A stretch of 64,000 nt of DNA. Source: Haplodiscus bocki. Lineage: Eukaryota. The stretch lies in assembly GCA_965655095.1 (NCBI GenBank), contig OZ296651.1, forward strand, positions 30,752,001 through 30,816,000, in the 5' to 3' direction. A model generated the notes under the pieces. The model was given only the letters and a program-made list of their open reading frames with translations, ran no database searches and was not told the origin of the DNA. The translations under genes and the position numbers were made by a program. The number at the start of each line of letters is the position of its first letter. The stretch's first letter is position 1. Of this stretch, positions 10,786 through 43,100 are shown one piece after another.

Positions 10786-10956
10786 GTGAATTAATTTCTT
10801 TTAAAAGCTCGGGAATAGTTGACACTATGTAAATTCTTAAATTCTTTTTTAGTCGCTCTATTTCTAAAACTCTAGTTCTTAAGATCCCTCTAGTGCATCA
10901 AAGAGCCGAGCCAGTCAGTGTAAAGCTTTGAAAATATTCACCTGACATGGTTTTAG

Positions 10957-11522
10957 ATTTCCGTCCCCAGAGGCAACCGATTCCTGCAGATAAGAATCTT
11001 TGCTGGAATTCTGAAAATGACAGTGGAATTGGCTCGGGAAGCAGCAATCCATCGGATTCTTCCACTGGTGATGAAGATGCAGCCTCCAAAGACATGAATC
11101 AAATCAGGAGCTGTACTCTAAGCAACGTTTTTTCACCCAATTCTCGAAAGTTAACCCGTAACATCAGTTGTCCCTCAATAATCTCTCGACCCATCACTCT
11201 ATCAGTTTTGCCTTTGGAAGCAACGTGGTGTAATGATACACTAGGCCCAGATTCACCTGTCTATCTTCGCTCAGATCCGAGCAATGAGTCTGATTGGGAA
11301 TCTGATACTGAGAGTGAGGACGTGGAGACACATTATCCCTCCCGAACAACCAAGTCTAAAGTGAAAGCAGCCGCTAATGCTAAGCTGTCTGATGACGCAT
11401 CTGCAACCGAATGGGACACTGGTCTTCTCAAGAATTGTTTCTGCTCATCCAAAACAATCCTCAAATGCAGTTTTTGCGTTGAGCTCAGAAAAACAAATTC
11501 CCATTCTACACATGAAAGAACA
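10957..11522 (+). CDS. PPP1R15: PPP1R15-like gene, coding exon 2
   Basis: PEST-like acidic segments (DSGIGSGSS, ESDWESDTESED). Ends ...HERT at a canonical phase-0 GTAAGT donor (11523). Confidence 0.7.
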
Positions 11523-13668
11523 GTAAGTTGTCTATCCTGGTTTTTGTATGCAATCTTTTATACGTTAGTGTTACTTTTTTTGACACAAGCGCTGAAATGC
11601 TTTCAGCTATTTTTACCAACAATTTCGGAACTTCAGGTGTCTCGTTTTGTTGCTAGTCTTCTTGCATCAGACCGGTTTGTGCTATTGTTCTCAGGTAGTC
11701 ATTTCGGCACTTTGCGTGACCTGAAGAGTTATTACTTTCACAAGTTAAATTACTGTTGAATTACTATAAATTAATGGTTGTAGGGAGAATCGAGGCGTGC
11801 AAACTATCTCAGAGCCACCATTCAAGTTCTAAGTGATAGTGTGGTCCAGTCAGTATATTTCGTTCATTCGCAATCAGTGTCAATGTTAAATAGAATTTAG
11901 TTTGTTGCTTTTCCAGGGCTGCCTTCGATTTCTTGAAGATTTACGAACTATTTAACATGAGCGATACCTAAAGAATATCAATTTATACGTAACAAATAAA
12001 TACAAATATTTCAAGCTAAGTCCGAGAATGGGCTCAAATTACGGGACGTTTTAAAATACCACTATAAGTAAAGCTTCAGAGCATTATTAAGTTGATCACT
12101 GTTTCAGGTCTGAAATGGTCACGTGAGTACTGTTAAAGTATTCTGAAATTCAATGCCTAGGAAATCAATTGTAAATATTCAAGTTGATTAATTTGCTCAA
12201 GCACTTTTGAAAATGTCTTCTGATGGAATGCAATTCCGTGTGTTTGCGGTACATGAGTAACGTTAGGCTTATGTATGAAAGACGACTGCGGTCGTCGTTT
12301 ATGGTAACTTTGTGGATTCGTTTGATGTTAATGCCATGTTGGCTATGATCAACTGTAATGGAAAGCATACGGATAAATCCATTGCAACAGGTTTCTAATG
12401 CATGATAATTTTGCATGGCACCACAGGGATTAGAAAGGAGTTTTGACTTGAAAAATGGAGTATGGAAGGTCGTGGATTTCCCTTCAAGATAGTTGGTATC
12501 TGGGACCGGAGAGTGTGCTTTTTACTCTTTCTAAATGAAAAAAAGAAAGTGTATTGGAAACTGGCTCATGCATAGTTTTATCCTGTCCAAAATTTGCATT
12601 TTGGGACGTCATCGGAGAGTCTAATTTAAACGGTCAAAAAGGGCCTTTTTTTTCAAACACCTTGGCTGGTGCTTGTTGATTTTCGCCTACTGAAAAGTGC
12701 AAAATTTTTGAATTTGAGTCTGACAATTGAACAACAGCGTTCTAAAGATAATGTTTCACATAAAAATGTTTTGAATGAGACAATGTGGGTAAGGTATTGG
12801 GTGTCTTTATTTAAAGAGTTATACTAAAAAATTGTGTTTATCAAAACTCAAAGTGCTTAATATGAGTAAACAAGGCATCGGAATGTCTTTCAAGTGGGAA
12901 CATACCGCTCGTCAATCATAAAAATGGCACTGAATTCGATCTCAAATTGTGAAAATTTTGGTTCAGATTATGAAAGTTGTTTACACTTATTTGACCGAAA
13001 TGAGACAACTTTCTGTTTGTTGTTTTAATTAGGGGTCACAAATAAGTCTTCATGATTCGCTAGTGAGATCAAAGTTTTTGAAGCGGTTTTGTTAACTAGT
13101 GTTACCGATTTTCAGAGCTATAAATTGTTCAGGCAATTTTTTTTGGGATACCTAGTTTTGTTCATTTTTGCGTTGTTCACTGTCTGAATTTTTCAGAAAT
13201 TGGGCTACAAAATTGCGATTCTTGGAAGACATGACTGAGCGATTAAATTTTGACTATTAGACACTGACAGTATCTAGTATGAATTGCACTTTTTGGGGCA
13301 AATTTTTGACAGGCAGATGGTGCAGTATTTCTACAAGTATCAATCCTTGATGTATCTGATCATGGTTCAAATATCTCAGGAGCTTTAGTTTCAGCTTTAT
13401 TTTTGACTTCAACTGACAAGTCAGAATGAGTTGCGAAGTTCCGGTTCACCTCTGTGTCAGATGTTTTTCGGTCCAGAGGCCGTAAAATTTATCCTGATTG
13501 TTTTTTGGCATCATTCTTATTGGTAGACGAAGAGTTACTGCTCGTTTTGGAGGAGAATCTCGTAATTTTCGGGTGTTCTTGCTGTTTTCACAGTAACCCT
13601 AACTCAGTGTTTTTTATTGCGGGCTTATGCCAAGGCATTTTTTGGCTCAGTTTCAGCTGATCTTTTAA

Positions 13669-15599: not shown

Positions 15600-18500
15600 T
15601 GGAATCGACTGTAACTTTTGGAAAGTTCTTCCTTTCAAATACAGCAAAAAATGATCCAAGTGCTAGAGCGCGTCAAATGTTTTCAAGGAAACCAGCAGAA
15701 GGAACAGCGTCCAGTATCCACTGCAGGGTGTCAAGTAAGGATGGCTTTTGAAAGAATCAGAGTTTTGGCGCCATTACATAAGTTGAGTCAACCTTGTCTA
15801 CTCGAAGTTCTAAAATTTAAATGCGACCAAAATGTATGCCACCGCCACTGAAGGAGGGAGATAAGCACAGGTCTCCGTGACATCAGAAGGAACCGGAAAC
15901 TTGACCACCGATGTCTCATTTTTTTCTTGGGTACCAGACAGATGAAGTTGATTGGCGACCGTAGAAAAAACGTGGGAACTCAATTTGACATCTGATCAGG
16001 ATATGCGCCAAGTCTCAGAGCCTGCTGGAGCGTGCACGCACGCGATTGGCACCAACGTCACTAAATTGATGGTTGACAAGCTTTCAAAAACGATTTCCAA
16101 AAGCCTTCATGCTCTTGTGCAAAGGACCGACGTGATGTGGAGAGCCACAAATTTCAAGGAAAACGACAGTAGAAATGTCGAAGGATGTATCACTGTCATT
16201 AAGTTTATAACCAAAGCTTCTCAATCACCAGTGGAGGATCCTTATAAGGTGTGGCTAGTAATCAACTTCTTGAAAGGTGAAACGATAGGCTTCGTTTTCT
16301 ACAAAGCTCTGTCCAAGATTGGGGAACCGGAGCAAAACTTCCAGTTACTGTTACGAAGATTTGGACTGGGTGCTCAAGAGAGCCCAATTCAGGGGCTCCT
16401 TTGCCAACTGATAGCATAAGCTAAGAGAATCCAATATGCAGTAGTTTGATGAAATAGAAGGGTTGACGAGCGAGCGAAACGCGAAGGATTTTTCTGAAAT
16501 TCGTTGTTATGAAATCAAGCAAAACTTCATGGCGAGGCTAATGAACCGAGGCCTACCTCGGAGCCTTGCCTCGCAGAACGCAGAGGAAGGCTACGTAGAA
16601 TAACCTCCCACTGTAGGAGAATTGAGATATTTGGCCTAAGACAGGATGGGAATGGGAGAACAATACCATCAAGGGGCAGAGCCAAGACCCATACCCTACA
16701 ATCCGAACCAATTGACACTAGCAGCCCCTAGCCCCGCAGTACCAGTAGCAATTCCCCAGCCAACCTTGGAGCCACCCAAGTCTGTAGACAACATAGTTCG
16801 ATATCTGATCCGGGGGATGTCCCATGTCATGTTCCAATTGTTTCCAATTTAGACCCTATGCAATGGTTGTGAACTACCGCGAAGGTACGGCAACTTAACG
16901 CAACCTGTCATCATCGTGTCCAACCGAACCGAAATGAAACCACCCGAACGATGAACTTGAAGAATCCTTCAACTGTGAACCTCTTCTGTTCCAGATGTGG
17001 AGAAAGGCAACATTTGGATTCTAGTTGCACCGACAGTGCTAAGGATTATGCAGAGGCTACCTGAGCATGGTATCAAAATCAACTGGACCAAATCAGGCTT
17101 CGATCAAATGCAGAATCCCAACAAAATTATTAAATATTTTCCGTGATTAATCACAAAGTTCCAATGCAAAATTGCGCGATTTCCCGACGAGTTCAATTGT
17201 AGATAGATCCATCCACAAAAAGAGCGAGCTACCTTTACCTTGGACTTGTAACTATCCCATGTGCGCCAATTTGAACCCCGTTTCACCCGTCAGGAGCTGG
17301 CATGCAGTTTGAATTTACGTACTCAGCGAATCATATCGGGAGGAAAAGTTAAACCACCATGGAAAGTCGCTGGACCTTTGCTAGCGTGGTTATGCATCGT
17401 GAAAGAGACCTCAAAACGGAAGCTATGCTAGTGCAAGGTTATTTCAATGAAAAAAAGTTTTTGGCAAGTCGGAGGTTGTTACTTGAATTCGCGGGAGACC
17501 ACATTGATCAGAATGCAACATTTGTTTTGATTTTTTCAGTGCGACAACGGTCAGTGAATTTGTGTAGAATAATCGATGCTGTGGCTGGAGCCTCAGTAAT
17601 GACAATCTAAGCTCGGCTGAAAATAGCTTCGATTGACCAACGCAGCTTGTTACCCCAACATATCAATCGTTTAAAAGAAAACAGACTGGGCATTCACACC
17701 TTGGGAGTAGCGGAATGAGTGTTCTTCATGCAAGCAGGATTCATGTTGCAAGCTAGCTTTGTTGTGGTTGATGACTCTCTATCTAATAACTTCATTCTGG
17801 GAAAATCATTCCTGAGACAATACGACGTGTAGGTAGATTTGAAGTCAAAGAAACCCGTCATCGGTGATCCCCATCAAGATACTTGACAGCAGCTTTCATG
17901 AGGTATGTATTGGAGTGCCGACGTATCCCCTTAGAGTCACGGAAAAAAATTCAAACAATGGGAATCCAAAATAAAAAGAAAGTTGAAGATGAGGGGTCAT
18001 TCAGATTGGTTAAATGTATTTGAACTGGTCTCTGTCATCAAGAGTGAACCCCTTCCTCAATTGTTTTTCCTTTTAGCTGACACTGTAAAGATCGTGCAGC
18101 AGAAACAATCCATTTTCTGCTTCATGAGAAATGATACCCGTGAACCGAATGTTCGACAAGTTGATAATATCATTGGAGAAATTTTTGGAACGCAGCAAAG
18201 TGACTCAAAATTGAAATTTGAACCAAATTGTGAACGTGAATGAAAACAGACATGATGTGAAAGTGATTAATAGTGTTTCAATTAATTTATTATCTGAAAG
18301 TGAGTTCCTGTTCAGCTCTGAGTTGCTCCTAAATGATAATAGTGTTTATGAAGTGGACAAAACTGGATCGAGCGTTATCGGAGGCCATCCCAGCTCCGAT
18401 ATTACACCGGTAGGAAATGCTTGGGGATTTAAAGAAACAGGAGTGGATAATCTGGATGAAATATGAAGACAACTCCATGAGACATATAGGCGATCCAGGT

Positions 18501-19088
18501 AGATGTACTTTGTTGGAACACATAATAGAACTAAATCCTAATGCCAATCTGCTTCGAGAGGGAGCTAGACGAATTTCTCGTGATAAGGCAGAGAAACCCA
18601 ACCGAGAAATTTGCTCTTGTTGGCCATAGGCAAGATTGAACCATCTTACTCGCCCTGCGAAAGTGGAGTGATCATGGTAAAGAAATGCGCTTCTGTTTTG
18701 ACTTCTGACAACTTACTGATGTTACTGTCAAGACGTCTATATCTCTTGCCTTGGATCGACGGAAGTTCTGCCTATTGGGCAAAACTAAATATTTCACCAC
18801 CTCAGATCTAACCTCAGCTTTCTGTCCAGTTGCTTTGAAGACAAAATATCGACCAAAAACTGGTTTTGTGTGCAAGCTAGGCTTTCTGGAGTGGAAGAGA
18901 ATGCCCGTCGGCCTTTGCAATACAACTGCCTTCTTCCAGGGATCAATGAACTAACTTTATCATCAGCAGAAGAGCAAACTGGCAGCATGATTATCTGCTA
19001 CATTGATGATTTCATCCTTGCTATTGAAACGGTTGAGGAGCATTTCGTTCGATTGAGAGATGTTTTCGATTGTGTCAGAGACATAGGA
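15600..19088 (+). pseudogene. Gypsy-2 gag-protease-RT (5' part)
   Basis: CSRCGERQHLDSSC (CX2CX4HX4C, ~16987), IIDAVAGASVM protease relic, KYFTTSDLTSAF...EWKRMPVGLCN and CYIDDF (YIDD at 18999-19010). Confidence 0.85.
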
Positions 19089-19771
19089 CCTAGCGCTGGA
19101 GGCTAAGGTCAAAATAGGGCCGTTGTCTGAGAGTAGTCGGCTTTGAGTATTGACGATGCTGATTTTATAGTACACGAACATTCATAATTTACGTCCTATG
19201 TACAATCCTCAGTTCAATAATTCGAGCCAAGGTTTGAAGGACTTTTTTTCCATATATGCGCTATATTTTCCAAAAGGTGAGCACAACGACAAGAGCAGGA
19301 TCCTATATCAGGATTAGACCCTCGGCAAAAGTTAATCGGAGAATATTAAGACGTACTAAAGAAATGTTGGAAAAAACGATTTGAAGAGTAACACATTAAG
19401 TGTCAGAAGTGGCAACTGAGGGGTAGCCATGTATACATTAAGTTGCAAATAGAGTAGTAATCGGGAAAACAATTGCAATTCACATGCAGCACACGGGAGA
19501 AAAGGTTCATTTTAACGATCGTTTAAGAAATTTTTATTCAACAATGAGATTGACGAAACTGAAAATTATGAAAATGGGTTCTAAAAGCAATAATAAAAGC
19601 CCTGGAACAGAATTAAAAGAGTTCTAACAGTAGGGAAAACATTAAACTAGTGTTATTCTTTTCAGTTGTGCCACATTTCAGTGGGCTCATCCGATAAGAC
19701 AAAATCTGTCACTTTAGATATAGTAGACAGATGAAGATCAGATTAAATGTAAGTTACATCACTGGTCGATT

Positions 19772-20791
19772 CTATGGGTGAGGTGGCCTGGGGTTTTTCA
19801 AACTCTGCATTCTTGTTGTTAGGTCACAGTTGGGTTGTAGAGACACAATGTGGAACTCGTGCACTTCTTGAAAGGAGTCTCCTTCTGTTTTCGATGGCTT
19901 GAACCACCCAATAACCTTGAAGGCCTCGAACAAAAGCTTTCTAGTCTCTTCCGGTTCAAGAGTGTGCCTATTAATTTCCTTCACCAATTCGCCCAAACAC
20001 TTCTGAAAATTGAGGTTATTGAAGGTGTTTGGATCGTTCGGACGCAAATGTTCATGATTGTTTCTGACTAGTTTTGCGAACGAGACGGAGATAAAAGAAG
20101 ATTTCTGATGGTTTGTGCGATCAAGCTGAAGTTCGTCGCACTTAACATGGGTCCTGACACCCCAAGTACCGTAGCCGTCTTTCTCCACACAAGCGCAATG
20201 AGTTTTTTTGGCCACTTTCCGTCACAGAATGCCCCCTTACATAGGTCCAATGTTGGCATGACGAATTTTAGCTCGACGCTCGTCGACTTGAAATGAAAGA
20301 AACGGATGTCATTTTCACTTTCGATATGGAAGGGTGGCAGTTCTCGGAAGGAAATATCTTTAATATTTCCAACAGGCACTAGTGGTTCTGCAGTCGCAAT
20401 CAGGACCTTGTCCCTTTATCCTTGGTTAAAGAACAGCTACCACACATCCGGGAGTGATTTTGGTGTTGTAACGCGTAATCACACGACTCTCTTTCTCTTC
20501 ACTCCTGAAAAGGGCGACTACTTTGTTAGAAGTTGGGTGGCAAAATAGAAAAAATCCGTCGTAGCTAGACTGCTGCATTTTCATCTTTGCCGGTTTTTGT
20601 CCACCACTTGAAAACGTTGTCTTGAACTTTAGGGGCTCAGTGGATCGTTCACCATGCAAATACACCAGATGTAACTTCTGAAGTTCAGAATCAGCACCAG
20701 AAAGTAAATCTGGCAACAGCTTTAATTCATATTCAGCAATATGGGTTCGTTCTGCCTCCACGCTCAACGATGTAGGTAGTGAAGAGTTCAT
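19772..20791 (-). pseudogene. Helitron accessory ORF, Cys-cluster protein, possibly OB-fold/RPA-like (frameshifted)
   Basis: ORFs 20426-20815, 20068-20379 and 19772-20215 join into one ~340-codon frame with CKGAFCD...HCAC and a beta-rich end FKVIGWFKP...FHIVSLQP. The function is inferred only. Confidence 0.45.
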
Positions 20792-22099
20792 TTCAGAGAA
20801 GCTGAAAAGTGTCAACTAATGAAACAGGCACGCAAAAAGGCACTCCGGACTGCTTTCAGAACGAGGGGGAAGTTATTGACTGTGCTCTTTTTGGTAGCAA
20901 TTGTGAAGTGTTTTCAATACAAATATGTCGAAAAAAAACTTTTCAGACTAGGTTAGTGCATTCACTCCAGGCTTCAATTTATGTCGATATTACCTGGCCA
21001 AGTAGTGGAAAAAGTAATATCGTCAATTTCGTCACAAAGTTAATGTACTTTTTAACACAGTGTCTCTTGAACAGAGGGGTTAATTTGGTTGATGTGAATG
21101 GGCACATAAAAGTTTTTCAACTGAGTCGCAACACTTACCGTGGGAAGCCCATTGACAGTATCAGCAGTATGCGTGATTACTTCGCGGGAAAAAATCCGAG
21201 AAATCTATGAAGTCAATTCTGGTGGCACTTTCAGTCAATTATGAACGTTTTCTTTCGGATGTAATTTACGCTGATGGAGAAGAGCTGGTATTGTGTATAG
21301 GATTGTTTTCGCAGAATATTTGAAACTCAAATCAATGTAATTCAAAACTGTATGAAGAGCATTACAGGCAAAACATAGCCTCAGCGACATTTTGACAACG
21401 TTCAAAGTTCCTAAGGAAACCGAAATTTAAAGGCATAGCAAACTTTAAAAATTTCGGGATAGCTTAAGCTCCTCAGTTAAATGTACATCAACGAAGTTTT
21501 GAAAGGATGAAGCAGAAAATATCATTTCACTCTCAGGAGGAAAAATAGAAACTAAGTCTGTTTCATCAGAAATCAGTTGGGGAACAATACTAACTTGAAA
21601 CTGCGTGAAAAAGCCCGCGCTCAGCTTTATCAGGCAGCGCCCGGGCAACCGGCATATGAAGGATGTGACTTGTAAGTTATGATGAAGTTGTATTGACAAG
21701 TTCAGAAGAACACACTGTTGTCACGGGATTTCGAGCTTCAACTATTATAATAAGAGACTTCGTTTAAACACAATCAACGGAACATTATTTTACCAATTTA
21801 GTGGCAATTTAGCAAATTTTACAAAAGCATCAAATTTGTAGGGGTCCGAATTCACTGATGAACGAGAGCTTAATGACTTCAACGAATTAGGGACAAGCTT
21901 TTTCATTGGAAAAGAAAATTGAGTTCCCAGGTACCCACTTTCTTGCAACTTTACCCACAGTTGCTAGTCGAGTAAAGGGGGAAAAATTTATTTTTTGCAT
22001 CATTGGGAAAAAATGTTCGCGTATCAACTTGGTCACTTTTCTGGTAGTGGAGCAAAAAAGGTAGCACTTAACTTGAACCTTATTTTCCTCCATGGTACT

Positions 22100-25000
22100 T
22101 CCAAGAGATAGTTTTACCGGTAACAACTGCATGTAGACCAGCAATGCTGATTTTGCTTTCCTCAAAGCATCTCAGAAACAAGTCTAGTACTTCAGCCGCC
22201 GATCCTTGCCCGTTTCTGGCGTTGAAACTTGAGAAGAATTCGCATTCGCTGAGGATTTTCTCGAGATCTATACGTTCTTGCCTGTTTTTTTCCCGTTAGG
22301 TCACTGAAACCTGTCGCGAAGCACAGTACACCCCAAGGTCTAAGGTGGATCTGATTGGTCAAGTACGATTCGCTGCCTGAAATATGCTCACGTAGACGTC
22401 GCCGTAAGTCTGAAGTTTGCCCGACGTATGTACTTGTGACATCTTTAGTACTAACCAGAAGGTAAACAAATCCCACCTCACCTGGTGGTAATTCAATTTT
22501 TCGAGGTGTGAACGGCGAAAGGTTTGCTATGTGTAGTGAGCTTGATGGCTGATTGGAGGTAATATTGACGAGTCTTTCCGTGAATTCGTCCCACTGGGAG
22601 GACTGTTTGAGAAGTCTTCTTATTGCATCTAAAGTGACATGTTTATATCGCCCAAAAAGGTTATGTCACCCAAATTTTGAACTCGGCTTACCAGAACATA
22701 CAGCTGGTCTCTCTCCCAAAGGCATTATTCGCGTTCGAAACAATCAATTTTTGTGATAATTTTACCAATGGTTTCCCCCATAGCTTTATGTATAGTCATC
22801 GCCATGAAATTTTTCAACGGAAATTGAATATGTCTAATAGATGAACCATGGAAATTATTCACAAATCCAGATTGTTTATACAGTGAGACGTCGAACCAAC
22901 CATTATCATAAAACATGTACATTCCTCGGCTATTTTTCGGAGGCAACTTCCGGACACCAGGCGGGGCTACAATAACATCAATTTTTTTGTGGCCGTCGAA
23001 ATTTTTGAAAACACACATTTGACCTTGCGAAACGTTGAGTGCCGGCATGTTTACGGTTAACCTCAGCAAAGCATTTTCGTAGCAGTAAAGTTTTTCCGGT
23101 TCGAAACAAACTCGATTGAGAGCGTTTTTTATATAAGCAGGAGCAGCGTTCCAATTACTTGAGCAATTCACTTTCACTTCGTCTACACTTGGTATTTTCG
23201 TAACGACTTGGCCAGATGTTGATACTCTTTCAATTTGGGCATGAATTGCAGTCCATTCTGCCGCACGAGTTCCAGAAACTCGTACAGCATCAATTGGACT
23301 GCTATCAAAATCACAGAAATGGGAATTTTTGTCGAAAGCTTTCAAATTTTGTCCGATTTCGGACTCAAGAATTTTTCGGTACAGACAGCATTTCAAAAAA
23401 CTGACGACCAACGAAATTAGTCATCCTAACGCATTTTTTCCAGGCAAACATTCTCACGCTACTTAAAATGATAGGAGATGTCCAAATTAGACGACCTTGA
23501 GGAAGCGGAAGTTGTTTGGGATCGCCTGTTCCGACAATGAGAATCCCACCAAACGGTGCAAAACTTTCACTCGCTTTGAAGTATATAATCGATAACAGCG
23601 AATTTTTCAGCTGAAACCATACCAATCTCCTCGAAATACAATATGTCGATTCGTTTGATTAGGAATTGCTTGAAAATATCATTTTTCAGTTTTTGCATTC
23701 TCTTTTGCACAATAGTATTGACGTTTAAGGTACTACTAACCGGCAAACAGAATAGGTCTTGTATATGCATGGCTGCGAAAAGCATTGCCCGCTCACTACT
23801 CAATGATGTTACCAAGACGTTCAAACCCTGGCAAAAAGCATAAAGAAGAGCGTTAGTAATAAAGAAAGTTTTTCCAGAGCCAGACATTGCAACGACGAAT
23901 CGATGTTTGAAAGAATTGGCGGTAAAATTTCTGAATTCGTCAATAGTTTTCAAGGGCAAAATAACGAGCATTTGCTTTTCGTTGAAAACAACATTTGGCG
24001 ACTCAATAGGGCTACATTGAAGAGGCGTGTCCAAGTTGCAATCAAGAATCTGATTAACTGGAGGTTTTTCTGTGTCGAATACGAGTTCATGTATTTGTGT
24101 TGTAACATTTGATAATTTTTGTCTCACGGACTCCAAAAGTTCTTTCGTGCACTCTTCCTGCAAAGCAGCATAAACAATCGTGGGTGTTTCGAGAATGTCG
24201 TTATTGTTGCTCAAAGTGCTCAAAGCAACTTTAGCGTCAACGATCTGACGATCCTGAGAAATGTGTGATCCGGGAATATACACCACGCGTTTCAAAACGA
24301 AACGTTTTAAATTTGCATTTGTTTCTGAATCTGTAATTAAGTTAGCGTCTGAGACTAAACCTGCCTTCTCAAAAGCAGGGGGAAGGGTTCCACCCTGAAA
24401 AAAAGTCGAACTCTGTTTCAAACCTTCCGAACTGAAGCAGCAAACTAATCAGAAAGTTCGGAATGTGTCTAGGCAGTGTGTTAGGAAAAACTACAACCAA
24501 AGGCTTCGCTTCTGAAGTCCGTTCATCAACTAAATGGGAACAATAACCACTTCGGAATACATTTTGGTAATGGGTAGCAAACTGAGCGTATTTTTTACGA
24601 TTGGGACTTTGGTAACTTTCGGAGAGAAGTTCGAGAAATTTTTCAGTGCCGCCCGGTCTTAAGCGAATCAAATTTCCTTGTGGCGTCAATGCAAGAACTT
24701 GTCTCCAGATTCTCACTCAAAGGATTCTGCAATTTTGGAACTCTTATCTTTTTGAATGAGAAATATCGGAAATATAGTTCTGAGTCATTAACGAAATGTA
24801 ACTCAGGAGGTCTGAGCTCGAATAACGACACTTTGTCGATTGTTAGACTCGAATGGATATATTCCCGCAGAGTTTTGTCTTGGTTTTCACTGCACAATCG
24901 GTTTTGTGGTAAGTGTATAGTTTTTCTAAATCTGACGAAATTGTAGTCTTGATCGTTTTGACCGAACATATCAATGAAGCGGTTGTACTTTGTCCTGCGT

Positions 25001-28000
25001 TTGAAGCAACTTCGATTTTCAAGAGGCAAGGTATTCACGTGAACACAAGTTTACGCCGGAAAGACATATTTCAAGTCCAACATGCTCCAAATACATTCAG
25101 TTGACGACAAAATGCGGCAAACTTCAGAAGTTGAAGTGTTTTTTTTCTTTTTCAGCTGCAATTTTCGCTCCCGCAATTTTTATCTTTCTTTTTCTTAACG
25201 CTAACTGGGACAGACGCACTAGACTCACCATGAATCTTTACTGTAGCGTGTTCTTCCACGCCAGCTGCGTTTTTCGCTAAATATGTAGCAGACATTATGG
25301 CGTCACAAACAATTCATGCTACCTTGATTTAACGAGTAAGTTTTTGTCACAACCGGAGAGAATGTTTCACCGAAGTCCGCTGCGTAATAATAGTAACCCG
25401 CCTTCAACTCTTGCGCTACTTCACAATGACCTTCCAACAGATGAGCTAAATGCAAATTCCGTAAAATTTCCCACACATCCTCACAATATGGTCTGCTAAT
25501 CAACTTGAAAAATGTTTCAGATCACGACTCGTACACTTTGAACCTACAAATTTTCTGGCCACTGTTATCACATTTTTTGCGACATCTGTAGTTCCCGCGC
25601 TCGCACGAGTGCGTTAATGTTTCCGCTAAACTGTGCAAATCGTCGACATTCTCCTCTGAGTTTAACAATGTATTTGTGGGGTCAGCCAATTCGATTTTCA
25701 GTTCATGCAACAGTTGGCGAAAAGATCCGACAATTTTGTTTTTGATAATGGGATTGTTCTTGTCCTCGTATGTCCAAATACTTACATGAAGGTGAGGAGC
25801 ATTGCCTATTGATGTTTGAAATTCAAAACGCGGAAAAATGATTTTGACAGTTCCCAGAGGTTTATCTTTGGATATTTCCAAATACTTAATGAAAAAAGCA
25901 GCCGCCCTTCCCCACAAATGCACATATAAAGGCATGAATCCCTCTTTCAGGTTCCTTCTCTCAGCATCACTCATATTAACACTATTCCGCTCGATTAGTT
26001 TAAACAACGGTGCCTTGCCGAACATTCTGGACTGGTTTAACGTAAACGTCAGAAAAAAGGTTGGCTCCTCCGACCGTATAGCCGAAGCCAATTCATTTAC
26101 GATTTTACGACTGTCTTCTTCATTCATCCGTTCAATGGCCTGAGAACTTTTGAAATTCAAAGACCGGAGTTCCTGTGAACCTCTGTTCAGAACAAAGCGA
26201 GAATCAAAATTTTGAGCTTGGAAGTTGAGGAAACAGTCAAAAATAAAACTGAATAACGCGCGGGTCCGAAGATTTCAATAACGACAAATTTTTCAAGCGA
26301 CTACGAATGTGAGAAATTATGTCAGCAAAAATGAAGCGCTTCGTCACTGACGCTGGCGCGAATAAGGGTGACGGAATCGCGCTACAAATGGAATTTTTGA
26401 CAGTGAGGTAAGAAATGGAAGGTAAAAGCACTGCCTCGGGTAACGTTAACGGAACACTTTCGCCGGGACATTTGGCAGTGAAAGATGTGAGGAAACGCCA
26501 TTCATTTTTCCTGAAGTTTGTCGGGTTTCTTGGCCTATTAAGTAAGGAACATACTGCATTCAAAATGACGTGACTTCCCACTGTTTTAAGGTCTTCTGCT
26601 GAATGAATCTGTACTGCTTCGGCGCCAGCATCCGTTTCGGAAACGTCGACAATTTCAATTACCCCGGCGTCCGTGGGAACATCAGTTTCACTAGTGGAAG
26701 CTTCAACTTCACTGTCATCTCCCCCGGAATTGTCACCTATTTCATCGCTTTGCCTTTTCTGTCTCAGGACCTCATTTTTCCCTACATGTGGTGTAACAGT
26801 ACTTTTTCCATCTATTTCACTGAAGTGCTTCTTACAAAGGGCACTTTCACACCCCTCAAATGGACATCGCCATGCTGATTGCAGGTACAGAAGTCATCAA
26901 ACTGGCAAAAAAGATTTTTTAGGAAAATCACAAGTTAACCGCAGTGTATGAGCATCACAAAACACCATATCTTGGCCAAAAATACTGAAAACATCCTGCG
27001 ATCTTTCTTTCTCATTTAAACGAGACTCAAGCCTTTCATAAACGCAAATTTTCCAGTTGTTTTTAGGAAGAAAAGAACAATAAAATTGATGAGTAACTTT
27101 TTGAGATTTACCAACAGTATTAATGTTCCACCAATCCTCGCAAACTTTGTAACGAAAGTTTTCGAAGTGGAATCGTCACTTACTATGTACACCAGTTTGA
27201 ATGTCCTATCATTGGTTTCCATACAGTCATTTGGAGGGAGAAGAGAACAATTTCTGGAGCAGCAACGGATCACGCGACAAAGTCGTGCTCGTTAGCAATG
27301 TCTATATTGAGGTCAACAGGTTGTTGCTTATTTTGGACTTCTACACACTTCACATAAGGTAATCGATGAAGCGTCTGGAAAACCGTCGACTCTTCTAAGT
27401 CGCGTTCGTTTTTACGCAATGCGTCATTGAAACTCTGTTTGAACGATTTTCATTTTTTGCCAGAAACATTCACGAATTTTCGATGAGAAACGCTGTTTTC
27501 TTAGATGTCCCTGTATTATGTTACTCATAAAAAGAACCGAATTAGCTGTCAAATCAAAGATAGTTTTTGATTTTTCTGAACCTACTACGTAAGTTGTTGG
27601 TGGGGCCCCCCCAAAGATTTATCCATCACTTTTACACAAGGAAAATGTAGTTTATTTAAAGAGCACACCTCGTTGTTCGATGGCTTACTAAAAGAACCGG
27701 ACTCCTCCTCAGGTTCTTGAAATTGACAATCAGAGTGTTCTGTTGGTTCTTCATCAATGCTGTCATGTAATATCTCATTCTCGGAGCTTGCAACGTCCCC
27801 CTGGACTTCATCAACTTCGTCAATAATAGTCAGAGGCTCAACCGTCTGAAGGTTTCTGACGTAGCGTAAAAAACCAATTGTTTCAAGGGGCAAGAAGCTA
27901 GTGTGATCTTCGAAAACAACAGCTTTCTCAATCCAGTCGAAGTTTTTATTTTTCAAATTAGAATCACCTACGGCCTGAGATAGGTGACCATTATTCACAG

Positions 28001-29341
28001 TTTTTTTAAAACCAATTCATTATCTTTTCTCGTCTGAAGGTAGAATGATTCGTGTAGGACATTTTCATCGCTCACTTTATCAAACGAACGGCTTTCTGAT
28101 AAGAAACAGGTGTTTAAACCGGCGAAACAAGATTGCAGCTTTACCATTTTTTACGACGCAGTCGAGAAGTTTTCGCGAAAAGGTTCCATTGTCCTTGTGC
28201 TCAAAATCGCCGACGCGAAACCATCGGGCAAGGATTGAAATTTCTACCGGCCGGGTGCCTAAGTAAATGCAAGTATTGTTGGTCAATTTTGTTGTTGTGA
28301 TCCCTACAAGTTAACAAAAACACGCCATTGACATTAAATAGAAGTGCTGGCTTTTTTGATGGAGCTAAAGGGTCTTCTGGGAAATTGATTTCCGTTAATT
28401 CGTAGTCACAACGGATTCCTCGTAAATAAACCGTAAATAAATTGAATTGCGAAAATGTTGGAATGATTTTGCCTCAGTAATGTGTAAAATCGATCTGTCC
28501 ACACTCATCAATAAATTCCTCACATACAACGGGGCATTCAACACAGGAAAAAAATTCTTCGTTGACACAGTTCACCATCTTCGCAACAGGCATTTTTTGT
28601 CTGAAAGCGTTGAATTTTCTTAGCCTCTCTGATACATCAGTGAAAACTGGAACACTTACCAAGTCCATCCTACTCCAAAAAACCAAATTTTCACACGCTG
28701 TTTTGTTTAGCCACCTCGACCTCAACGGAAAGGGAATGTTTTGCCAAAAGTTACAAGTGATATCTTCATCGGTAAGCATTATCCAGAAAACTGCTGGCCC
28801 AGCAAATTTCAAAGTGGCAATTTTGTTGTACGGAGGGTTAGATGGGTTCTCAAATGCGCTACACAATTGACAGAGAGTGATAATGCTGGATGTTTTGCTG
28901 GGGCCAAATTTTTTGTCAATTGACAATAGTGGTTCTTGCTACAGTGTCAAACTGTAATGGGAAACTCTCAGTTGAAATACGATGACAACTGTAACAGGTC
29001 CTCTTATTGGGAATAATTAAAGACGCTACTTCTTCGGGGGGCGACAAAATGGAGACTTCGAATACGCCTGGGTCCGAGATGCGATCCTCGTTAGCATCAC
29101 ACCTTGAGCATTAGCCGGTAGCAGACAACAGGCGGTCACATGGTTGACATTTCTCACGACGTGGTCGTTTGCGACCCATGATATCAGCAGAAACTGAAAA
29201 CTCCGCGCATGCATGCCGAACACATAGTTATTGGATTGTCACTGTTGCAAATTTGTAGCCCACTTTTTTAGTTGACCTTCCGGAACCACAGGAGAGAGAT
29301 TAAACTTTAATGTAGTGTTTTTTTAACCGATAAGAGGCCAT
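22100..29341 (-). pseudogene. Rep (HUH)-PIF1 helicase-GIY-YIG polyprotein, frameshifted
   Basis: Rep motifs PTFFLTFTLN, RFEFQTSIGNAPHLHVSIW and YLAKN (YxxKY relic, ~25280). Helicase motifs AMSGSGKT, LYFEEIGMVS, PFGGILIVGTGDPKQLP, QFPLKNFMAMTIHKAMG and LYVLVSRV. C-terminal GFVYLLVS...TYVGQTSDLRRRLREH...RPWG. Confidence 0.88.
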
Positions 29342-29861
29342 TTTCGCAATCGACATTTTGGAAAAAAGCGGCAATTTAGAAGTTTACTTTCAGGATTACT
29401 GACTCAGGTCACTTTTAAAGTGAACCAAAGTTTGTTTTCAGGAAATATAAGGATCTTGTCCCTTCTAAACCAGCTGCTCTCTTACGTGTTCGTTTTCCTG
29501 CTGAGAACAAGTTTTGTTTAAGAGTGCGAAGTACATCATTTAAATTTCCCTGGGAACAATCAGTAAAACTTATCGGCCACTATTAGTAGACCGCACTACG
29601 ATTAAATACTGTTGGTTGAAGATGAAAAGAACAATCGGAATGAGCACAGTCAATTGATGGGGCAACAGGAAATTTGCAATTCATAAAGTAATAACAAAAC
29701 AACATATCAAAAACTCAAAATCTTGACAAAAAATTAATAAGTTAGTTAACTTCGGAAGTTGCTTGGCAGTTGTAACAAACAATTGGGTACAAATGGGAAA
29801 GAAATAATGGAAAATAGCTGCATACAGGCTTCCAAAATGTTGATGACAGATACTTAACCCT

Positions 29862-30454
29862 CTAAAGACGAGCTGAAAATCGAACATTGTTTGTCAAAAT
29901 CCGATCATTCAGCTTTACAGATTGAGGAAACAATGTAGTGTACTCAGGGAAATTTTCGTTAACTATGGATCTCAGTTGGCTCCGTCCAAACTTGCTGAGA
30001 TGTATTTGATCATCCCAAACGATGAACTTTCTGCTCAACTTGGAGCCAACACCCACAAACTTGTACACACCGGTTGCACTAAGCCGAAGAGCATTGTTGA
30101 GTTGTTTTATGGCAAAAATAACTTCGTTGATCGTTCGATGTGGGACTCCCAAAACAAATACATTACCGTAGTATTTCAAGTACTGGCTGGCCGCCAAGAT
30201 GTCAAATGTGATTTTGGGAATTGTTCTCTGCCAACGCATCCGTCCCTGTTTGGTCTACTTTGCAAGCTGTTTCCCCCTATCATCAGAATAAAATGAGAAT
30301 TATTTTGCAAGGGAAAATTGGAAACAATACTAGGCAAATCGTCCACTCTCGCCCCAGGAACACACACAATATCACAATAGTCGATAACCAATTTCCGTAA
30401 AAGAGAATCACCAACCAACACAATTTCGTTTCCGCGTTCAGTTGAGTAAATCAT
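29862..30454 (-). pseudogene. SGNH/GDSL hydrolase-like ORF (frameshifted)
   Basis: Block I IVLVGDSL, block II VPGA, block III LMIGGNSL and block V DDQIHLSKFG (DxxH), spread over ORFs 30176-30460 and 29862-30239. Confidence 0.8.
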
Positions 30455-31940
30455 TTCCAATTGGAAACCATTAGAGTTAAAAAAACATTATTCGGTCTGA
30501 AAAGGGACTCGTTACCTCTGCTTTTTTCCAAATACATGAAACACTCCCGCAAAAACTTGAGCAAAGTACGCTCTAACGACGATTTTAACTCATTGGAACA
30601 ACTTTAGTTGACGTTTCGCACCACTTTCCTTCCAATGATTTGACCGATTAGTAGAGACAAAGTCCAAGATTAGCACGCTTTTAATTGGAATTAAAATCGC
30701 AATTACACGTTGACACGGTTGATACTTACCCACATAAACCTTACCATACAATGTCCAAAGAAAGACGGCTAAAACGATAATTGAATTACTTTAGTACTGC
30801 TAAACATTACAGATTTCATACAAAAAAGCCCTACGGAGGGCACGAAGAAACAAAAGGCAAAGTTGCTCAAAGTTTTGGAAAAACAAATTTCAGTCAAAGC
30901 GCTTTCGTGTGAGATTGGAAACTTGATTAGAACCACTCATGAATACTGAAAGTCGTCAAAGTAAAAAAAAAACGAAATTTAAGAAAATCATTTCCAATGG
31001 AACTGAATGAAAACTGAGCGCATAATCTTTTTGACATACTACTTCTAAAGACTTCAAACATCACATACGCGTTGTAGCTTAACAGGGGAACTGTTTCCTA
31101 CTTCTGCAAGCGTTCCCTAAAGTGCCCCAGAAAAAAGTTATGGCCAGTTGAAACACAAGGACTCTGATGAAAATGTCCGGTGGGTCAAAATTCGTGGCCT
31201 GAAAAACGACAAAAAAATGAATTTTTTTTTGGAAAAACAAAAACTCACCAGCTAACTGCATCAATTGGGCTAAATATTGCAGAAAAGAATGGCCCGATAG
31301 CTATCCTACGAAAAAATTGCCGCCAGAAAGCATTTTATGATCAAAAACTGGAAAAAGTGTGGTTTTTTCCAAAAAAAATGGTCATAACTTTTTCCCACTT
31401 TGTTTTATGGAGTTTTTTCCTGCTAAACATTTGTTCACATATGGATGGGCAACAAGGGGTAATGGCACCGTGAAACCACTTTGATAAGTGGGTGCCGAGT
31501 TACGGGACCTTAAACTTGAAAAACACGTCTCAGACCCATTTTTTGACCTTTTTCAAATTATCATAAGTCAACGTCAGATTGTCGTACAGCAGCGTTCTAC
31601 AGCTCATTTTCCCCGCTGATTGACGTACTTTCCGCATGCAGCCACTTGCAATACTAGTTGTGTGGACGAAGTTGGACTTTGGGCCCAAAAACCGTCAAAA
31701 AATGGAAAATAGGCGAAATTGACGTCACAAAATGGCAAAATATCCAACATTTAGAAAAAATCCGGAAAAATGCCACAAGGGAATGCTGATTAGCTTGCTC
31801 ATACCTAGAAACGTGCAAATTTTCAGCCGATTCTATAGGCTCGTTTCGAAAATCGATTTTTTCCCACCCTTTTTTGTTACGTCTAATTTCCCACAGGGGC
31901 TGCCGCTACCGGGTCCCTCCCCGGGCGGCCTGAGAGGTTA

Positions 31941-33880
31941 GGAAGCATCCCGGACCACGAAAGATCACCGCGGAAAGCATGATGCCTGGAAAAAGACGCC
32001 GTATGGAAGCTACAGGAGTGGCAACGCCTCAGAATAAGGACCGACTGGCACTTTTTTGAGATCTGCCTTTTTCCATCGCCATTTCATCCTAGACTATGCC
32101 GCCATAGTTCATCCCATGGTAATTCTCTTGAAAATGTGTCAACTTGTAATGGTTGAGAGACGCTCAGCGAGCATTTGAGCGGATCATGGGACTTGTCAAA
32201 CCCAGTAGCATTAGCCTTGGCAGCATATGAACGATGTTTCCTGGACGCAGACGCAGGTAATGTTGGATTGTCAGACATTCTTGGTCAAGATCAAGTTTGG
32301 AGTACTAGGAAAGTGATCTTTCTGGTGTATTTTGGCAGCAAGTCTTTGAACCCTACTGAAATGAAGATTGGAACTCAAAATGGGAAAGGTTCGCAGGCGG
32401 TCACGTTTATCTAAAAGCTCACGTCGTATTTAACCCACGGATGCTCATTTCGAGAATCGATAATCAAGCTTCATGCTGGCTAAAGACACTTTCTCGATGA
32501 AGGAATCAGTTGATAGTGGATCGTCCTACTAAACGAATTTGAGATGGAGATTGAAGCTTGATCAATTACGAAGCTCGGGACTGCAGCTGGATAGAACTTA
32601 ACCAGAAGATCAATCACTACATTCGGCGGCAAAGGAAATCGCCCATATAGCGCACAAAAAATTGAACTCCGCTTCATTTTACAAGAAAAAATGACATGCT
32701 ACCTCCGTGCCTGAGTTGGGCAGCAAGAAGCTGGGTCGTTGCATCAAGTCTTAATCAGTGCCTGACTCAGTAAAAGTTCTGCCAACCAAGTCCCCCAAAA
32801 GCTTCATCGAAAAGTGGGTAAAGACAGGAAGTCCAGGAGCTCTGCCCCAAACCGGAGTTCACCATTTTTTGACAATATCCGTGGGAGCAAGAATCAACTG
32901 ACGAATTTTCGACAAAGAAATTTTGCCTTGTTCGAGCACCTGCTCTAGCGAAAGGATTTCAAAACCTTGATGTCATACTTACCAACATTTAGCAAGTTTC
33001 GAACATGCTCAGCTCAACATCACATCATCACAACTGTCCTAAAAAGAACACCATAGCAACGTCTATTCCATAAGCAATTCTCTTGAAGCGCGTCGAGCAG
33101 ACACCTAATCCAAGCGATACATCGACTGATGGCAAACATCTCACTGGAGGACTCAAGAATCAGTCCGGAAATGCATTTTAGACCAGTGTGAACGGAAATT
33201 ATTCGTCAATTTAAGATGACATCCTTTGTACAAGAAAGCCTTTCAAAGAATAGGCCAGATGCCGCTTCCAGCATCTAATAGTGATGTCTCAATTTTTTCA
33301 TTCGGACAAATCGAAAAATCCCTGACACTCGTGCTTGAGGCAGATAAAGGATTGTCAAGTCCTGAATACATCGCGGTGATTGGCCAGCGAAGTCAAGACT
33401 TGTATAGCCGACTGCCCGGCTTGCGAGGAAAAGGGACTTCGTAATGATGCCCTACGTTGAGGAATTAAAAACATCTTTCAGAATTTTCGTTGAATTATTG
33501 CAGATTGACAACCTCATAATTTGCAAAACCAAACCGGCCATACTGGAGTGAAGTGATCATTGAACACTTCACTGAGCCAATGAATACACTGCTGAAGCCA
33601 GAATACATTTTTTAATTCATTGGTGTGCACAAAATGGCGCGCTATGGTTTTTGCAATCTGATGATGGAACCCAGTTTACAGCGGATTTGACTCAAGAATT
33701 CATCTGATTGTCTCATGTAGTTTAAATCTTTCCAGCGCCAGCCACCCACAGAAGCAAGTTCTAGTGGAACGCCAGAATAGAACACTCCTCAGTTTACTCG
33801 CTGTGTACTGCAGTAGACGAATGAAGGAGTTGAATACCAACAGGGCTCAAAGTAGGTGCTGTTATTGAATAACACCGTTC
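31941..33880 (+). pseudogene. Gypsy-2 RT C-terminus, RNase H and integrase (3' part)
   Basis: KHPGPRKITAE (KYLG-like), FLDADAGNVGLSDILGQ...YFGSKSLNPTE (RNase H), and ELLQID, SDDGTQFT, VERQNRTLL (rve integrase). Confidence 0.8.
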
Positions 33881-40182: not shown

Positions 40183-43100
40183 ATGTTTCCCTGTTGTAAA
40201 TGTGATAAATTGTTGAGCTCAAAACGTGCCTTAAATGATCACAAGCGAAAGAAGCACAATTTGAAGCGATTGATCTGGCCAAAGTTTTCAAATGTGGTCA
40301 TTGTGAGGTTTCTTTCACAAAATCTTGCAATTTATTGCGCCATCTAAGGAACCAACAAAATTCATCGGGCAACTATCGATGTTTCTCTTTGGAACCTCTC
40401 AACATTGACTCAACACCAAGAACAGTATCATTGCGATGTATCTCTTGGTAGACCAAATATCAACGTCTCTATTTGCTCGATTTCACAACTGAAGCCGTTA
40501 ATTCTAAATTCCAAATTCATCGACTCAAGCTTGAGGACTCTGATGGTTTGCAACCGTTCAACTACATTATTTCTCAGAAAGATACAATCATTGCATTTGT
40601 GAATTCTTTATTGAGCGTGACCCAAACGTTAAACTCGGTCTAAGCATTGCAGTGAAACTGGAAAAGCCTTTGGAGAGCGAGGTAGTAGAAGCTTTTTTCA
40701 ATTCGGCCATGTCTCGAGTTTCTTCTCAGCTCACCGATGTCGAGTATTTGCAGCATGTGGATGCCTTGATGACACAGTTGATTGTATTCGCCACACGTGG
40801 TTCAGGATGGGTGGTGGGAACATTGGCACTGTTGGAAATCAAAACAGTCTCCTGTAGTAAAGTTACTGGCGGCTCATATTTAGAAACGCCACCAATTCTC
40901 AAACCACTGAATCGCTCGATTTTGAATGTTGTGAATAAACGTGATAACTTCTGCTTCTTGTATTGCGTTGCAGCTGCTCTAATCTCTTTCATCGGAAGAG
41001 CTAATAGTCCAAAGACCCGTTAGAAAAACATCGAGCGGCTGTCTTTCAACTCAAAGCTAATGCCGATGCCTCTGTCCGCCATTCCTTCTTCGGAATCGTT
41101 GCTCAATCAGTGTTTATCAGATGGAGAACTCCAGGATGGTGTCCGTGTATCACAGTAAGAATCGAAGAGGAAGACACAATGATCTTCTTGGCCTAATGAA
41201 TAACCAAAACAGTCATTATTGCCTGATTGAAAATTTCTCGAATCTTATTGATTTCCTAACTAGTTCCAGAATCAAGCGCGACCTTGAACGAAAGTCGCGC
41301 TTTTGCCGAAACTGCTTTCAACCGATAACTAAAAAGAACTTCAAGAAACACGTTTCCTTTTGCGAAAGTAACGCACCACTTGAGACTCGAATGCCTCTTG
41401 AATCACCAACAATTGAGTTCGTCAATTGGGAGAAAACACAAAAGTGTCCCTTTGCTGTTTATGCTGACCTTGAGGCAATCAATGTGGCTTCAGCAGAATT
41501 TCCTCAAACTAAATGTCGGACAAGGGAAATTGAAAGGCAGTATGCAGCCAGCTTTGGAGCAGTCCTGGTTGATTCTGGAAGTTAATTAAACTTTGCTTAT
41601 ATCTCCGTGACGTTTTGGAAAAAATCTTATCTTTACCACTACTGTTGACCTTATTCAAATTTTAACTTGGTTATGTTCAGTGTGATTTCGTTTCAGCGAG
41701 TGGAATTGTTAAACAAGGTTTCTACCGGGGATTGGACTGTATTGCAAAGTTGTTGGATATGTTGCGTGATTGGTTATTTTGGTGCTACGGTGAAAAACAG
41801 ATGTTCAGACGTTTAATGGTTTTCGGGGCAGCAGCGAAAGCGGATGTTGAACGTGGCAAATGTTTCGTGCTGCTTATGTGGCATGGATGTGGAATAAACA
41901 GTTCGAGTGATTCATCACTGTCATCTTTCGGGAACAATTTTTGGCGTTGCCCATTCAAAATGCAATCTGAGAGCCAGAACGACGAATTTCTAACCAGTTA
42001 TCGAGATACGATGCTCAGCATATTTTGAATCACCTGAATTTAAAGGTGGGTTAAGAACTGGCTGCAATTGCCAAAACTGATGAAACATACATTTCATTCA
42101 GCACCAATATACCTGTGGACACTTACAGAAAGCAATCGGGGCAACTGGTTAAATTTTATCAATCTCTTCGCTTCCTCGACAGCTATCAATTTGTTTCTCA
42201 AAGTCTAGAGAATCTTGCAAAGACACTGGAAAAAAGATGACTTCTTTTTACTCAAGCAATTCTTTCACAACGTTCCGGACCAAATTTTTCTCAAGCTCAC
42301 TCAGAATGGTTTTTTTCCTTACAGTTACCTCGACAGTTTCGAAAAGTTCTAAGAGTCTTTTCCAAATTATGGTGATGCTTGGAGAAATAGTCTCTCTGGT
42401 AAAATCGATATCACTTATTCTGACTATCAACATGCAGTCAGTCTTTGCAATGATTTTGGTTGCCAAAACCTGGGAGACTATCACGACGTTTATCTAAAAA
42501 CTAATGTGCTTCTTGTAGCTGATATCTTTGAAAAGTTTAGAAGTGTTTGCCTAAATGTTCACAGGCTGGATCCCTCTCATTTTTATTCGGCTCCGAATTT
42601 GAGCTGGGAATCTATGCTCATTTCCATAAGGGTTAAGTTGGGACTGTTGCAAGACATTGACATGCTATTATTTTTCGAGCGTGGCATTCGCGGTGGAATT
42701 AATGGAGTTGGAGAACTACGTCATTTCACAGCTGACAATGCTCATCTCGACAATCTTGATACGAGACGAAAAACAACGTTCGGCGCTTTTTACGATGTAA
42801 CATCACTTTACGCCGGCACAATGCAAAAAATGATGCCTTTAGATAACTACAGGTGGAACACAGAAATTACCATCGAGCAAATTTTGCAAGCTTCTGAAAA
42901 TTCAAGCGTTGGGTACTTTGTAGAAGTTGATCTGAAGTATCCCCAATATCTACACGATCTGCACAATGGACTGCCTTTAGCACCTGAAAATTTGATCATA
43001 CGGTCCCCATGGCTTTCACCTTTTGCCAAGTCTTTTGGAATTAAACCCAACAAAACGCCTAAACTGGTCGAGACGCTATTGGACAAGAAAAATTATGTCT

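Follow-up and report, generated by a model that had tools for sequence, protein, structure and literature searches.

A solitary decayed copy of a probable three-gene Helitron-like transposon in Haplodiscus bocki, with a transposase ending in an SLX1/UPF0213-type GIY-YIG domain

A stretch of 64,000 nucleotides from Haplodiscus bocki (assembly GCA_965655095.1, contig OZ296651.1, positions 30,752,001 to 30,816,000; hereafter the window, in whose coordinates positions are given) harbors on its minus strand, from 19088 to 31958, what we consider with a probability of about 0.8 to be a dead, though full-length, solitary copy of an autonomous three-gene Helitron-like rolling-circle transposon, whose transposase has an SLX1/UPF0213-type GIY-YIG nuclease domain at its C-terminus. 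The element is thus wider than the feature at 22100-29341 that had been marked in a first-pass annotation of this DNA. The fusion of the GIY-YIG domain to a Rep-helicase protein is genuine, and the resulting layout is real, old and barely described, although not fully undescribed.

Extent and ends of the element

The limits of the element were recognized through comparison with related loci, which, like all comparisons in this study, drew on natural copies only. The first of these loci, L001, was found via the contig of one of two short proteins matched in a word search with the GIY-YIG piece of the window. Using blastn, window positions 31958-19088 correspond to L001 737-13620, with 86.7% identity along the whole length, and a second whole-length copy (L005 7226-20109) is approximately 88% identical to the window copy and 99.5% identical to that of L001. 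The flanks of these three copies are all different, and homology ends at the same two points. Therefore, these points represent the ends of a 12.87-kb element (Table 1).

The 5' end of the element reads GT/GGTCCGG... and its 3' end ...CCAGCGCTAGGT. In the window, the flanking junctions are ...TTTCGT/GG... and ...AGGT/CCTATG (slashes mark the junctions), and the GT found at both leaves an ambiguity of 2 bp as to the position of the cut. A GGGGAGGGACCC box is located within a 5' hairpin, about 35-45 nt from the element end. When the element ends were folded, no hairpin beat shuffled sequence, with only a small, non-significant hairpin at the 3' end, and a search for terminal inverted repeats, carried out for one family, revealed none of at least 8 nt between the first 60 and the last 500 nt.

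Both ends of the autonomous element recur in non-autonomous derivatives, and there are no long terminal repeats. Six short units of 1.43 kb in L005 match the element only over its 5' approximately 1,040 bp and its last 40-48 bp, and in each unit about 340 bp of other sequence lie between these two parts. The 5' region that these derivatives keep likely represents the cis-acting left end. Within the 64-kb window, no further copies or derivatives of the element were found, nor was a paralogous empty site for the insertion detected in the window or the fetched loci.

Table 1. Coordinates of the features described in the window, together with the evidence for each.
Feature	Position	Strand	Basis
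Probable autonomous Helitron-like element, full-length but decayed, 12.87 kb	19088..31958	-	blastn against L001 and L005
5' terminal region, ~1,040 bp	30920..31958	-	Kept by 1.43-kb non-autonomous derivatives
SGNH (GDSL-type) hydrolase pseudogene	29734..30511	-	tblastn and alignment to intact 260-aa open reading frames of L001 and L005
Giant transposase pseudogene, ~2,360 aa when intact	22101..29179	-	Colinear tblastn to P0013 residues 1-2361
N-terminal region of transposase, ~850 aa, conserved Cys/His clusters	26610..29179	-	Cys/His columns kept in at least 16 of 19 giant relatives
HUH Rep endonuclease domain	25150..26608	-	HUH and Tyr motifs
PIF1-like SF1B helicase domain	22680..24000	-	Pfam PIF1 on intact P0013
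Conserved linker (22679-22489) and SLX1/UPF0213-type GIY-YIG domain (core 22488-22248)	22104..22679	-	Pfam GIY-YIG; family profile against SLX1
Conserved companion (third gene) pseudogene, 330-360 aa	19772..20791	-	Homologues downstream of transposase in L001-L009
Conserved 3' terminal sequence ...GACAACGGCCCTATTTTGACCTTAGCCTCCAGCGCTAGGT	19088..19135	-	95.8-100% identity (mostly 100%) to the 3' ends of copies, full-length as well as short, in L001 and L005
Three long open frames (354, 319 and 275 aa)	8554-11756	+	zf-B_box in the first (Pfam, E 2.7e-8)
Protein-primed family B DNA polymerase	42353-43312	+	Pfam DNA_pol_B_2, E 2.7e-12
A32-like packaging ATPase	50219-50674	-	E 1.1e-5

The transposase gene and its decay

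Translation of positions 21500-30000 in six frames revealed that the coding sense of the transposase gene is the minus strand and that its frame is shattered. Since the fragments of the window are too broken, intact natural relatives were used for domain calls. Among them is L005, where three intact co-oriented genes encode a 260-aa protein, the 2,361-aa protein P0013 and a 345-aa protein, with P0013 being colinear with window positions 29179-22104.

The sequence features on which the first-pass annotation had based its proposal of a Helitron-like transposase were recovered. The long N-terminal region, already described as containing Cys/His, carries conserved Cys/His clusters (CxxC...CxxC at 28996-28861 and C/H x7 at 26959-26834) and does not match any Pfam family. 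Within the Rep domain, the HUH motif NAPHLHVSIW (about 25794-25786) is intact, and in the Tyr motif SATYLAKN (YxxxY; 25283-25269), the first Tyr is kept and the second is replaced by Asn. The Rep piece resembles Helitron_like_N clusters at 0.95 based on language-model features. The helicase is represented by a Walker A motif (SGSGKT, 23890-23867) and the later SF1 helicase motifs, which run to about 22680, in agreement with the PIF1 motif series noted before. The GIY-YIG module, reading GFVYLLVS...TYVGQTSDLRRRLREH...RPW, is matched by Pfam GIY-YIG in the piece spanning 22665-22195 (E 2.9e-8), the closest solved relative of which is SLX1 (E 0.0019). This is the sole significant Pfam match among the pieces of the window, as nothing was obtained for its Rep, helicase, N-terminal, SGNH-like and third-gene pieces. 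Thus, of the profile searches suggested by the first-pass annotation, GIY-YIG was successful on the window itself, whereas Helitron_like_N was absent on its pieces and PIF1 remained weak and sub-threshold, reaching significance only on intact relatives (E 1.3e-12 for residues 1763-1897 of P0013).

The extent of decay had been underestimated. Instead of a single frameshift, the 7.08-kb transposase pseudogene contains 20 frameshifting indels and 8 in-frame stops in comparison to intact L005 and P0013, and, relative to L005, the SGNH gene has acquired 6 frameshifting indels and 1 in-frame stop and the third gene 2 frameshifting indels and 1 in-frame stop. Between helicase and GIY-YIG domain, there is an in-frame TAA at 22727 as well as a 2-bp insertion at 22648. 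The GIY-YIG domain itself is affected by a frameshift at 22294, the replacement of an invariant Asn by Ile, and the deletion of the catalytic Glu codon. Introns were rejected as the source of the frame changes, since the intact relatives are single uninterrupted open reading frames (ORFs). Judged by its reading frames, the window element is a dead pseudogene copy in which nothing functions.

It should be noted that the TAA between helicase and linker, which replaces TAT at codon 2156 (window 22727-22725, minus strand), is also found in L001 (9977-9979). A programmed stop was considered and rejected, as codon 2156 encodes Tyr in L005, L003 and all intact full-length ORFs. L001 and L005 differ at 62 sites, and the window shares the state of L001 at 33 of them and that of L005 at 25, a distribution that does not indicate special kinship. 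The shared stop could be a coincidence, a reversion in L005, or a product of gene conversion.

Fusion and lineage depth in intact relatives

That the GIY-YIG domain is part of the transposase is evident from intact copies, as the first-pass annotation had anticipated. Full-length, uninterrupted fused ORFs were found in P0013, P0014 and P0015 (2,361, 2,368 and 2,376 aa, respectively), and uninterrupted ORFs with PIF1 followed by GIY-YIG in P0003, P0004, P0007 and P0006 (63%, 62%, 35% and 32% identity, respectively). A profile comprising helicase end, linker and GIY-YIG domain (A1), searched against 1.84 billion cluster representatives, matched 2,988 representatives at E<=1e-3, 617 at E<=1e-10 and 98 at E<=1e-30. 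Nearly all matches begin at the helicase end, and 19 of the best 150 are proteins of more than 2,000 aa (hereafter giants). The matched segment forms the extreme C-terminus in 17 of the 19 giants and is located approximately 350-500 residues before the end in the other two (P0118 and P0146).

The 19 giants align end to end with P0013 at 23-43% identity. In this alignment (A5), no variation is found at H1131, H1133 and Y1304 or at the residues of Walker A and GIY-YIG, and Y1308 is almost invariant. Pfam detected GIY-YIG in all 19 giants, PIF1 in 17 and Helitron_like_N in 5 (E<1e-3), in addition to OTU and Peptidase_C48 in 1 each, while Exo_endo_phos, the apurinic/apyrimidinic (AP) endonuclease domain, and DUF6570 (E<=1e-3) were found in none of them. 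The fusion that had been proposed from the window alone is conserved across a deep lineage. Where sources name the relatives at all, they are listed only as 'predicted GIY-YIG superfamily endonuclease'. With the Rep mostly escaping Pfam Helitron_like_N and protein names being this uninformative, standard pipelines probably under-count these elements in marine animal genomes.

In comparisons between intact families, the proportion of synonymous differences (pS) is saturated at 0.74-0.90, and the proportion of nonsynonymous differences (pN) amounts to 0.14-0.46 in every gene and domain, with 0.20-0.31 for linker and GIY-YIG domain, similar to the rest of the protein. As pN is far below saturated pS, purifying selection is indicated. 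Between the window and L005, the ratio of nonsynonymous to synonymous substitution rates (dN/dS) has values of 0.24 (transposase), 0.20 (third gene) and 0.75 (SGNH gene). The former two values indicate that a large part of the 12% divergence dates from a time when the lineages were still active.

Type of the GIY-YIG domain

Across 22 divergent members, hardly any variation, if any, is seen at the GIY Tyr, the YIG Tyr, the Arg, the His-Asn pair, the catalytic Glu and the Pro within the RPW motif, the Arg and Trp of which are only mostly conserved. The core pattern Y...YxG...R..QHN.G...RPW...GF...FE..W is the same as in SLX1 and bacterial UPF0213/YhbQ. When a profile of the family (A6) was compared to all solved structures in the PDB, only SLX1 chains (E 4.5e-16 to 4e-13) and bacterial UPF0213 proteins (2e-8 and 3e-6) were retrieved, and no other nuclease. 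This justifies the label 'SLX1-type', which the first-pass annotation had already used, for the branch to which the domain belongs.

Nevertheless, these proteins are not SLX1 orthologues, since they end 50-70 aa after the nuclease core and these residues do not contain conserved Cys/His columns. SLX1, in contrast, has a C-terminal RING/PHD zinc finger and is a free repair protein with SLX4 as its partner, whereas the domain of the element is the tail of a transposase. In the SLX1 family, an SLX4-type partner activates the nuclease, and cleavage is structure-selective.

Companion genes

Upstream of the transposase gene, the SGNH gene shows conserved GDS, G, GxN and DxxH blocks (alignment A3). 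Its AlphaFold 2 (AF2) model reached a predicted local distance difference test (pLDDT) score of 74, and the top 50 Foldseek matches of this model were almost all GDSL/SGNH-type esterases, acetyltransferases and platelet-activating factor (PAF) acetylhydrolases (best E 4e-7, probability 1.00). Pfam and PDB profile searches did not return any match for this gene. It is present in L001, L003, L005, L006, L007 and L008; at L004, L009 and L010, the most distant loci, it was not detected.

Downstream of the transposase gene, the third gene encodes a protein with an invariant C-x4-C-x9-C-x-C cluster, which we take to resemble the zinc motif of RPA70. Its language-model neighbors are POT1, CTC1, MEIOB, CDC24 and Ssb-like oligonucleotide/oligosaccharide-binding (OB) clusters at 0.91-0.94, a recognition below threshold. 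Pfam and PDB profile searches were blank for this protein, and its AF2 model, calculated from a 7-sequence alignment, was unusable (pLDDT 31). On the basis of the language-model similarities, this Cys-cluster protein may have an OB fold, and it is probably a binder of single-stranded DNA (ssDNA). Accordingly, of the two companions assigned by the first-pass annotation, the SGNH hydrolase is borne out by its blocks and fold, and the OB-fold gene is left with language-model similarity that is weak.

The co-oriented order of all three genes is conserved in L001, L003, L005, L006 and L007, and the third gene additionally in L004, L008 and L009, where it adjoins even transposases that are only 29-32% identical (L004 and L009). 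The three-gene system suggested by the first-pass annotation thus recurs in independent copies and is therefore a real, conserved gene complement of this transposon subfamily. With all three frames broken in the window and two of them devoid of a Pfam match, one might instead picture a Helitron remnant that lies by chance next to decayed host genes for an SLX1-like nuclease, an esterase and a ssDNA-binding protein. However, other loci contain these 12.9 kb between different flanks, with the ends and the gene order being identical, and the nuclease shares one ORF with Rep and helicase in intact copies, which makes such a chance neighborhood extremely improbable.

Variation in accessory genes was observed among the more distant relatives. 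At L010, the most distant locus examined (P0106), a SET-domain ORF (16760-17521) directly follows the RepHel-GIY-YIG gene, and neither the SGNH gene nor a homologue of the third gene was found there. At L004, a 477-aa ORF (5841-7271) upstream of the distant RepHel-GIY-YIG gene shows a weak match to OTU proteases (E 0.002). Furthermore, 1 of the 19 giants contains a clear OTU domain, and another a Ulp1/C48 protease domain.

Relation to known elements

The element shares several properties with Helentrons and the HLE2 group: a giant single ORF in which an HUH Rep is followed by a PIF1-like helicase and then by an endonuclease in the same C-terminal slot, an accessory gene, here putatively of the ssDNA-binding type, and short non-autonomous derivatives with both ends in common. 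OTU, a frequent domain of Helentron/HLE2 elements, also occurs in one of the 19 giants, and a weak match was obtained at L004. However, the endonuclease of Helentron/HLE2 is of the AP type (Exo_endo_phos), whereas it is GIY-YIG here, with Exo_endo_phos lacking in all 19 giants. HLE2 elements are further characterized by terminal inverted repeats of 12-16 nt and insertion between T and T, neither of which applies here in the one family examined, and the Rep of the present element barely matches Pfam Helitron_like_N. The HLE2 marker DUF6570, as given in the HELIANO study (PMC11417382), was likewise not detected in the 19 giants.

The first-pass annotation had considered the system its best candidate for an undescribed one in the window, but 'undescribed' is too strong in view of published counterparts. 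In full-text literature searches, the moss family HelenSM92 (Sphagnum magellanicum) was the only Helitron-like family reported with a GIY-YIG domain beside RepHel, as in the present element; the corresponding study devotes one sentence to it, in which the domain is 'captured and transposed' (PMC11417382). There, the captured domain belongs to a TT-inserting HLE2 with terminal inverted repeats, and the comparison with the present lineage is one of descriptions only. The sentence does not comment on fusion, SLX1 type, lineage depth or conservation. RPA and Ssb-like OB genes are known Helitron companions according to the same study, which lists them among some 20 recurrent extra domains together with AP endonuclease, OTU and others (PMC11417382). 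For the SGNH gene, the counterpart is texim, a group of SGNH genes located directly 5' of fish Helitron coding regions, the role of which in transposition was left open by the authors (PMC4021074). The arrangement is alike in the present element, whose SGNH esterase gene directly precedes the Helitron coding region in the same orientation, and texim was reported to be related to PAF acetylhydrolase (PMC4021074), which is among the best structural matches of the SGNH gene of the element. However, the texim association was reported only in fish (PMC4021074), whereas the present element is from Haplodiscus bocki, and the likeness is one of position and fold.

These precedents raise the question whether GIY-YIG domain, SGNH gene and third gene are merely passengers captured from host genes without a role in transposition, which is how the HELIANO study phrased it for HelenSM92. 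Helitron-like elements often capture host fragments, the extra domains noted above are recurrent, and the SGNH gene, missing at the most distant loci and with a dN/dS of 0.75 in one comparison, would fit this notion. On the other hand, all 19 giants, despite an identity to P0013 of only 23-43%, carry the GIY-YIG domain in frame and in the same position, preceded by a conserved linker. The catalytic residues of the domain show little or no variation, pN is far below saturated pS, and 617 representatives match at E<=1e-10. Moreover, the third gene accompanies transposases with as little as 29-32% identity. Such deep retention points to selection on the element itself, and considering this depth of conservation, a passenger role is unlikely.

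A different parallel is provided by Penelope-like retroelements, whose enzyme likewise ends in a GIY-YIG nuclease that presumably nicks the target. However, these are reverse-transcriptase elements, whereas the PDB search places the present domain with SLX1/UPF0213.

Arrays and end-to-end joints

While the window copy is solitary, related loci contain arrays. In L005, seamlessly joined head-to-tail units of 1.43 kb adjoin the intact autonomous copy on either side (L005 1487-7227 and 20108-22979). Furthermore, clearly different element families are joined in L001, L003, L004, L005, L006 and L007 through an invariant CTAGGT/GG(T/C/G)C (the slash marking the joint), also written CTAGGTGG(T/C/G)C. 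The starts of unrelated elements in the same loci (L001 and L003-L007) have in common a GGGGAGGGNCCC box, which lies roughly 35-45 nt from the 5' end within a hairpin. Together, joint and GGGGAGGGNCCC box probably constitute a common Rep recognition site.

The window copy lies between ...TTTCGT and CCTATG... and has only GT in common with the array joint. Therefore, the full joint is not required for insertion, and this one solitary, decayed example shows that insertion outside arrays occurs. The arrays could also be taken to mean that the GIY-YIG domain is a sequence-specific targeting nuclease, which cuts ...CTAGGT/GG(T/C/G)C... so that new copies land in array joints, instead of serving as a general nuclease for second strands or flaps. 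The joining of many different elements via this sequence in related loci and the embedding of the autonomous L005 copy in such an array are in line with this notion. However, besides the site of the window copy, it is opposed by the fact that the Rep itself could supply the specificity and that SLX1/UPF0213-type domains are without a known sequence-reading module, with none following the domain here. We therefore regard targeting of the joints by the GIY-YIG domain as doubtful.

Possible role of the second nuclease

Under the reading of the element as an autonomous three-gene rolling-circle transposon, cleavage at the conserved ends (...CTAG/GT/GG(T/C/G)C...) would fall to the Rep, as in other Helitrons, and the helicase would displace one strand, to be transferred by the rolling-circle mode. 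Occupying the slot of the Helentron AP endonuclease, the GIY-YIG domain would most likely make a cut that the Rep cannot make. Candidates are a nick of the target or of the second strand, or the cleavage of a branched or flap intermediate at the junction. Such a use would parallel the endonuclease swapping in retroelements exemplified by Penelope-like elements. The protein encoded by the third gene would coat ssDNA, and the SGNH protein would act as an esterase.

Several points weigh against this reading. The Rep is so divergent that Pfam Helitron_like_N (E<1e-3) matches only 5 of 19 giants, and with neither a classical 3' hairpin nor terminal inverted repeats, the Helitron model may not apply in its details. 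The role of the GIY-YIG domain is argued only from its position and by analogy to the Helentron AP endonuclease and Penelope-like elements, and, with neither the zinc finger of SLX1 nor a known partner, structure-selective activity cannot be assumed. With respect to the companions, the OB-fold assignment of the third protein is weak, and constraint on the SGNH gene is relaxed (the dN/dS of 0.75 between window and L005), in addition to its not being found at L004, L009 and L010.

According to the common view, Rep and helicase suffice for Helitron-like elements. To our knowledge, the AP endonuclease of Helentrons is the one known extra nuclease, and it has never been assigned a role. That a large and old lineage has swapped in an unrelated SLX1-type GIY-YIG domain and kept its catalytic residues argues for a second nuclease being a functional requirement of this branch, and the domain offers a compact, conserved unit for testing such a requirement. 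A further-reaching interpretation, which we put forward only tentatively, holds that RepHel-GIY-YIG elements represent a third major Helitron-like group outside HLE1 and HLE2, which has its own ends (...CTAG/GT/GG(T/C/G)C... and the 5' GGGGAGGGNCCC hairpin box) and, in its SLX1-type nuclease, an essential second activity that cleaves the target or the branched junction. If true, this would explain the end-to-end stacking of elements.

Other features of the window

Two further regions of the window attracted attention (Table 1). Between 40500 and 52500, Polinton/Maverick-like remnants were identified, with several broken ORFs between the polymerase and the packaging ATPase. Furthermore, the three long open frames on the plus strand at 8554-11756, the first of which contains the zf-B_box, may belong to a TRIM-like host gene or to a gene carried by a retroelement.

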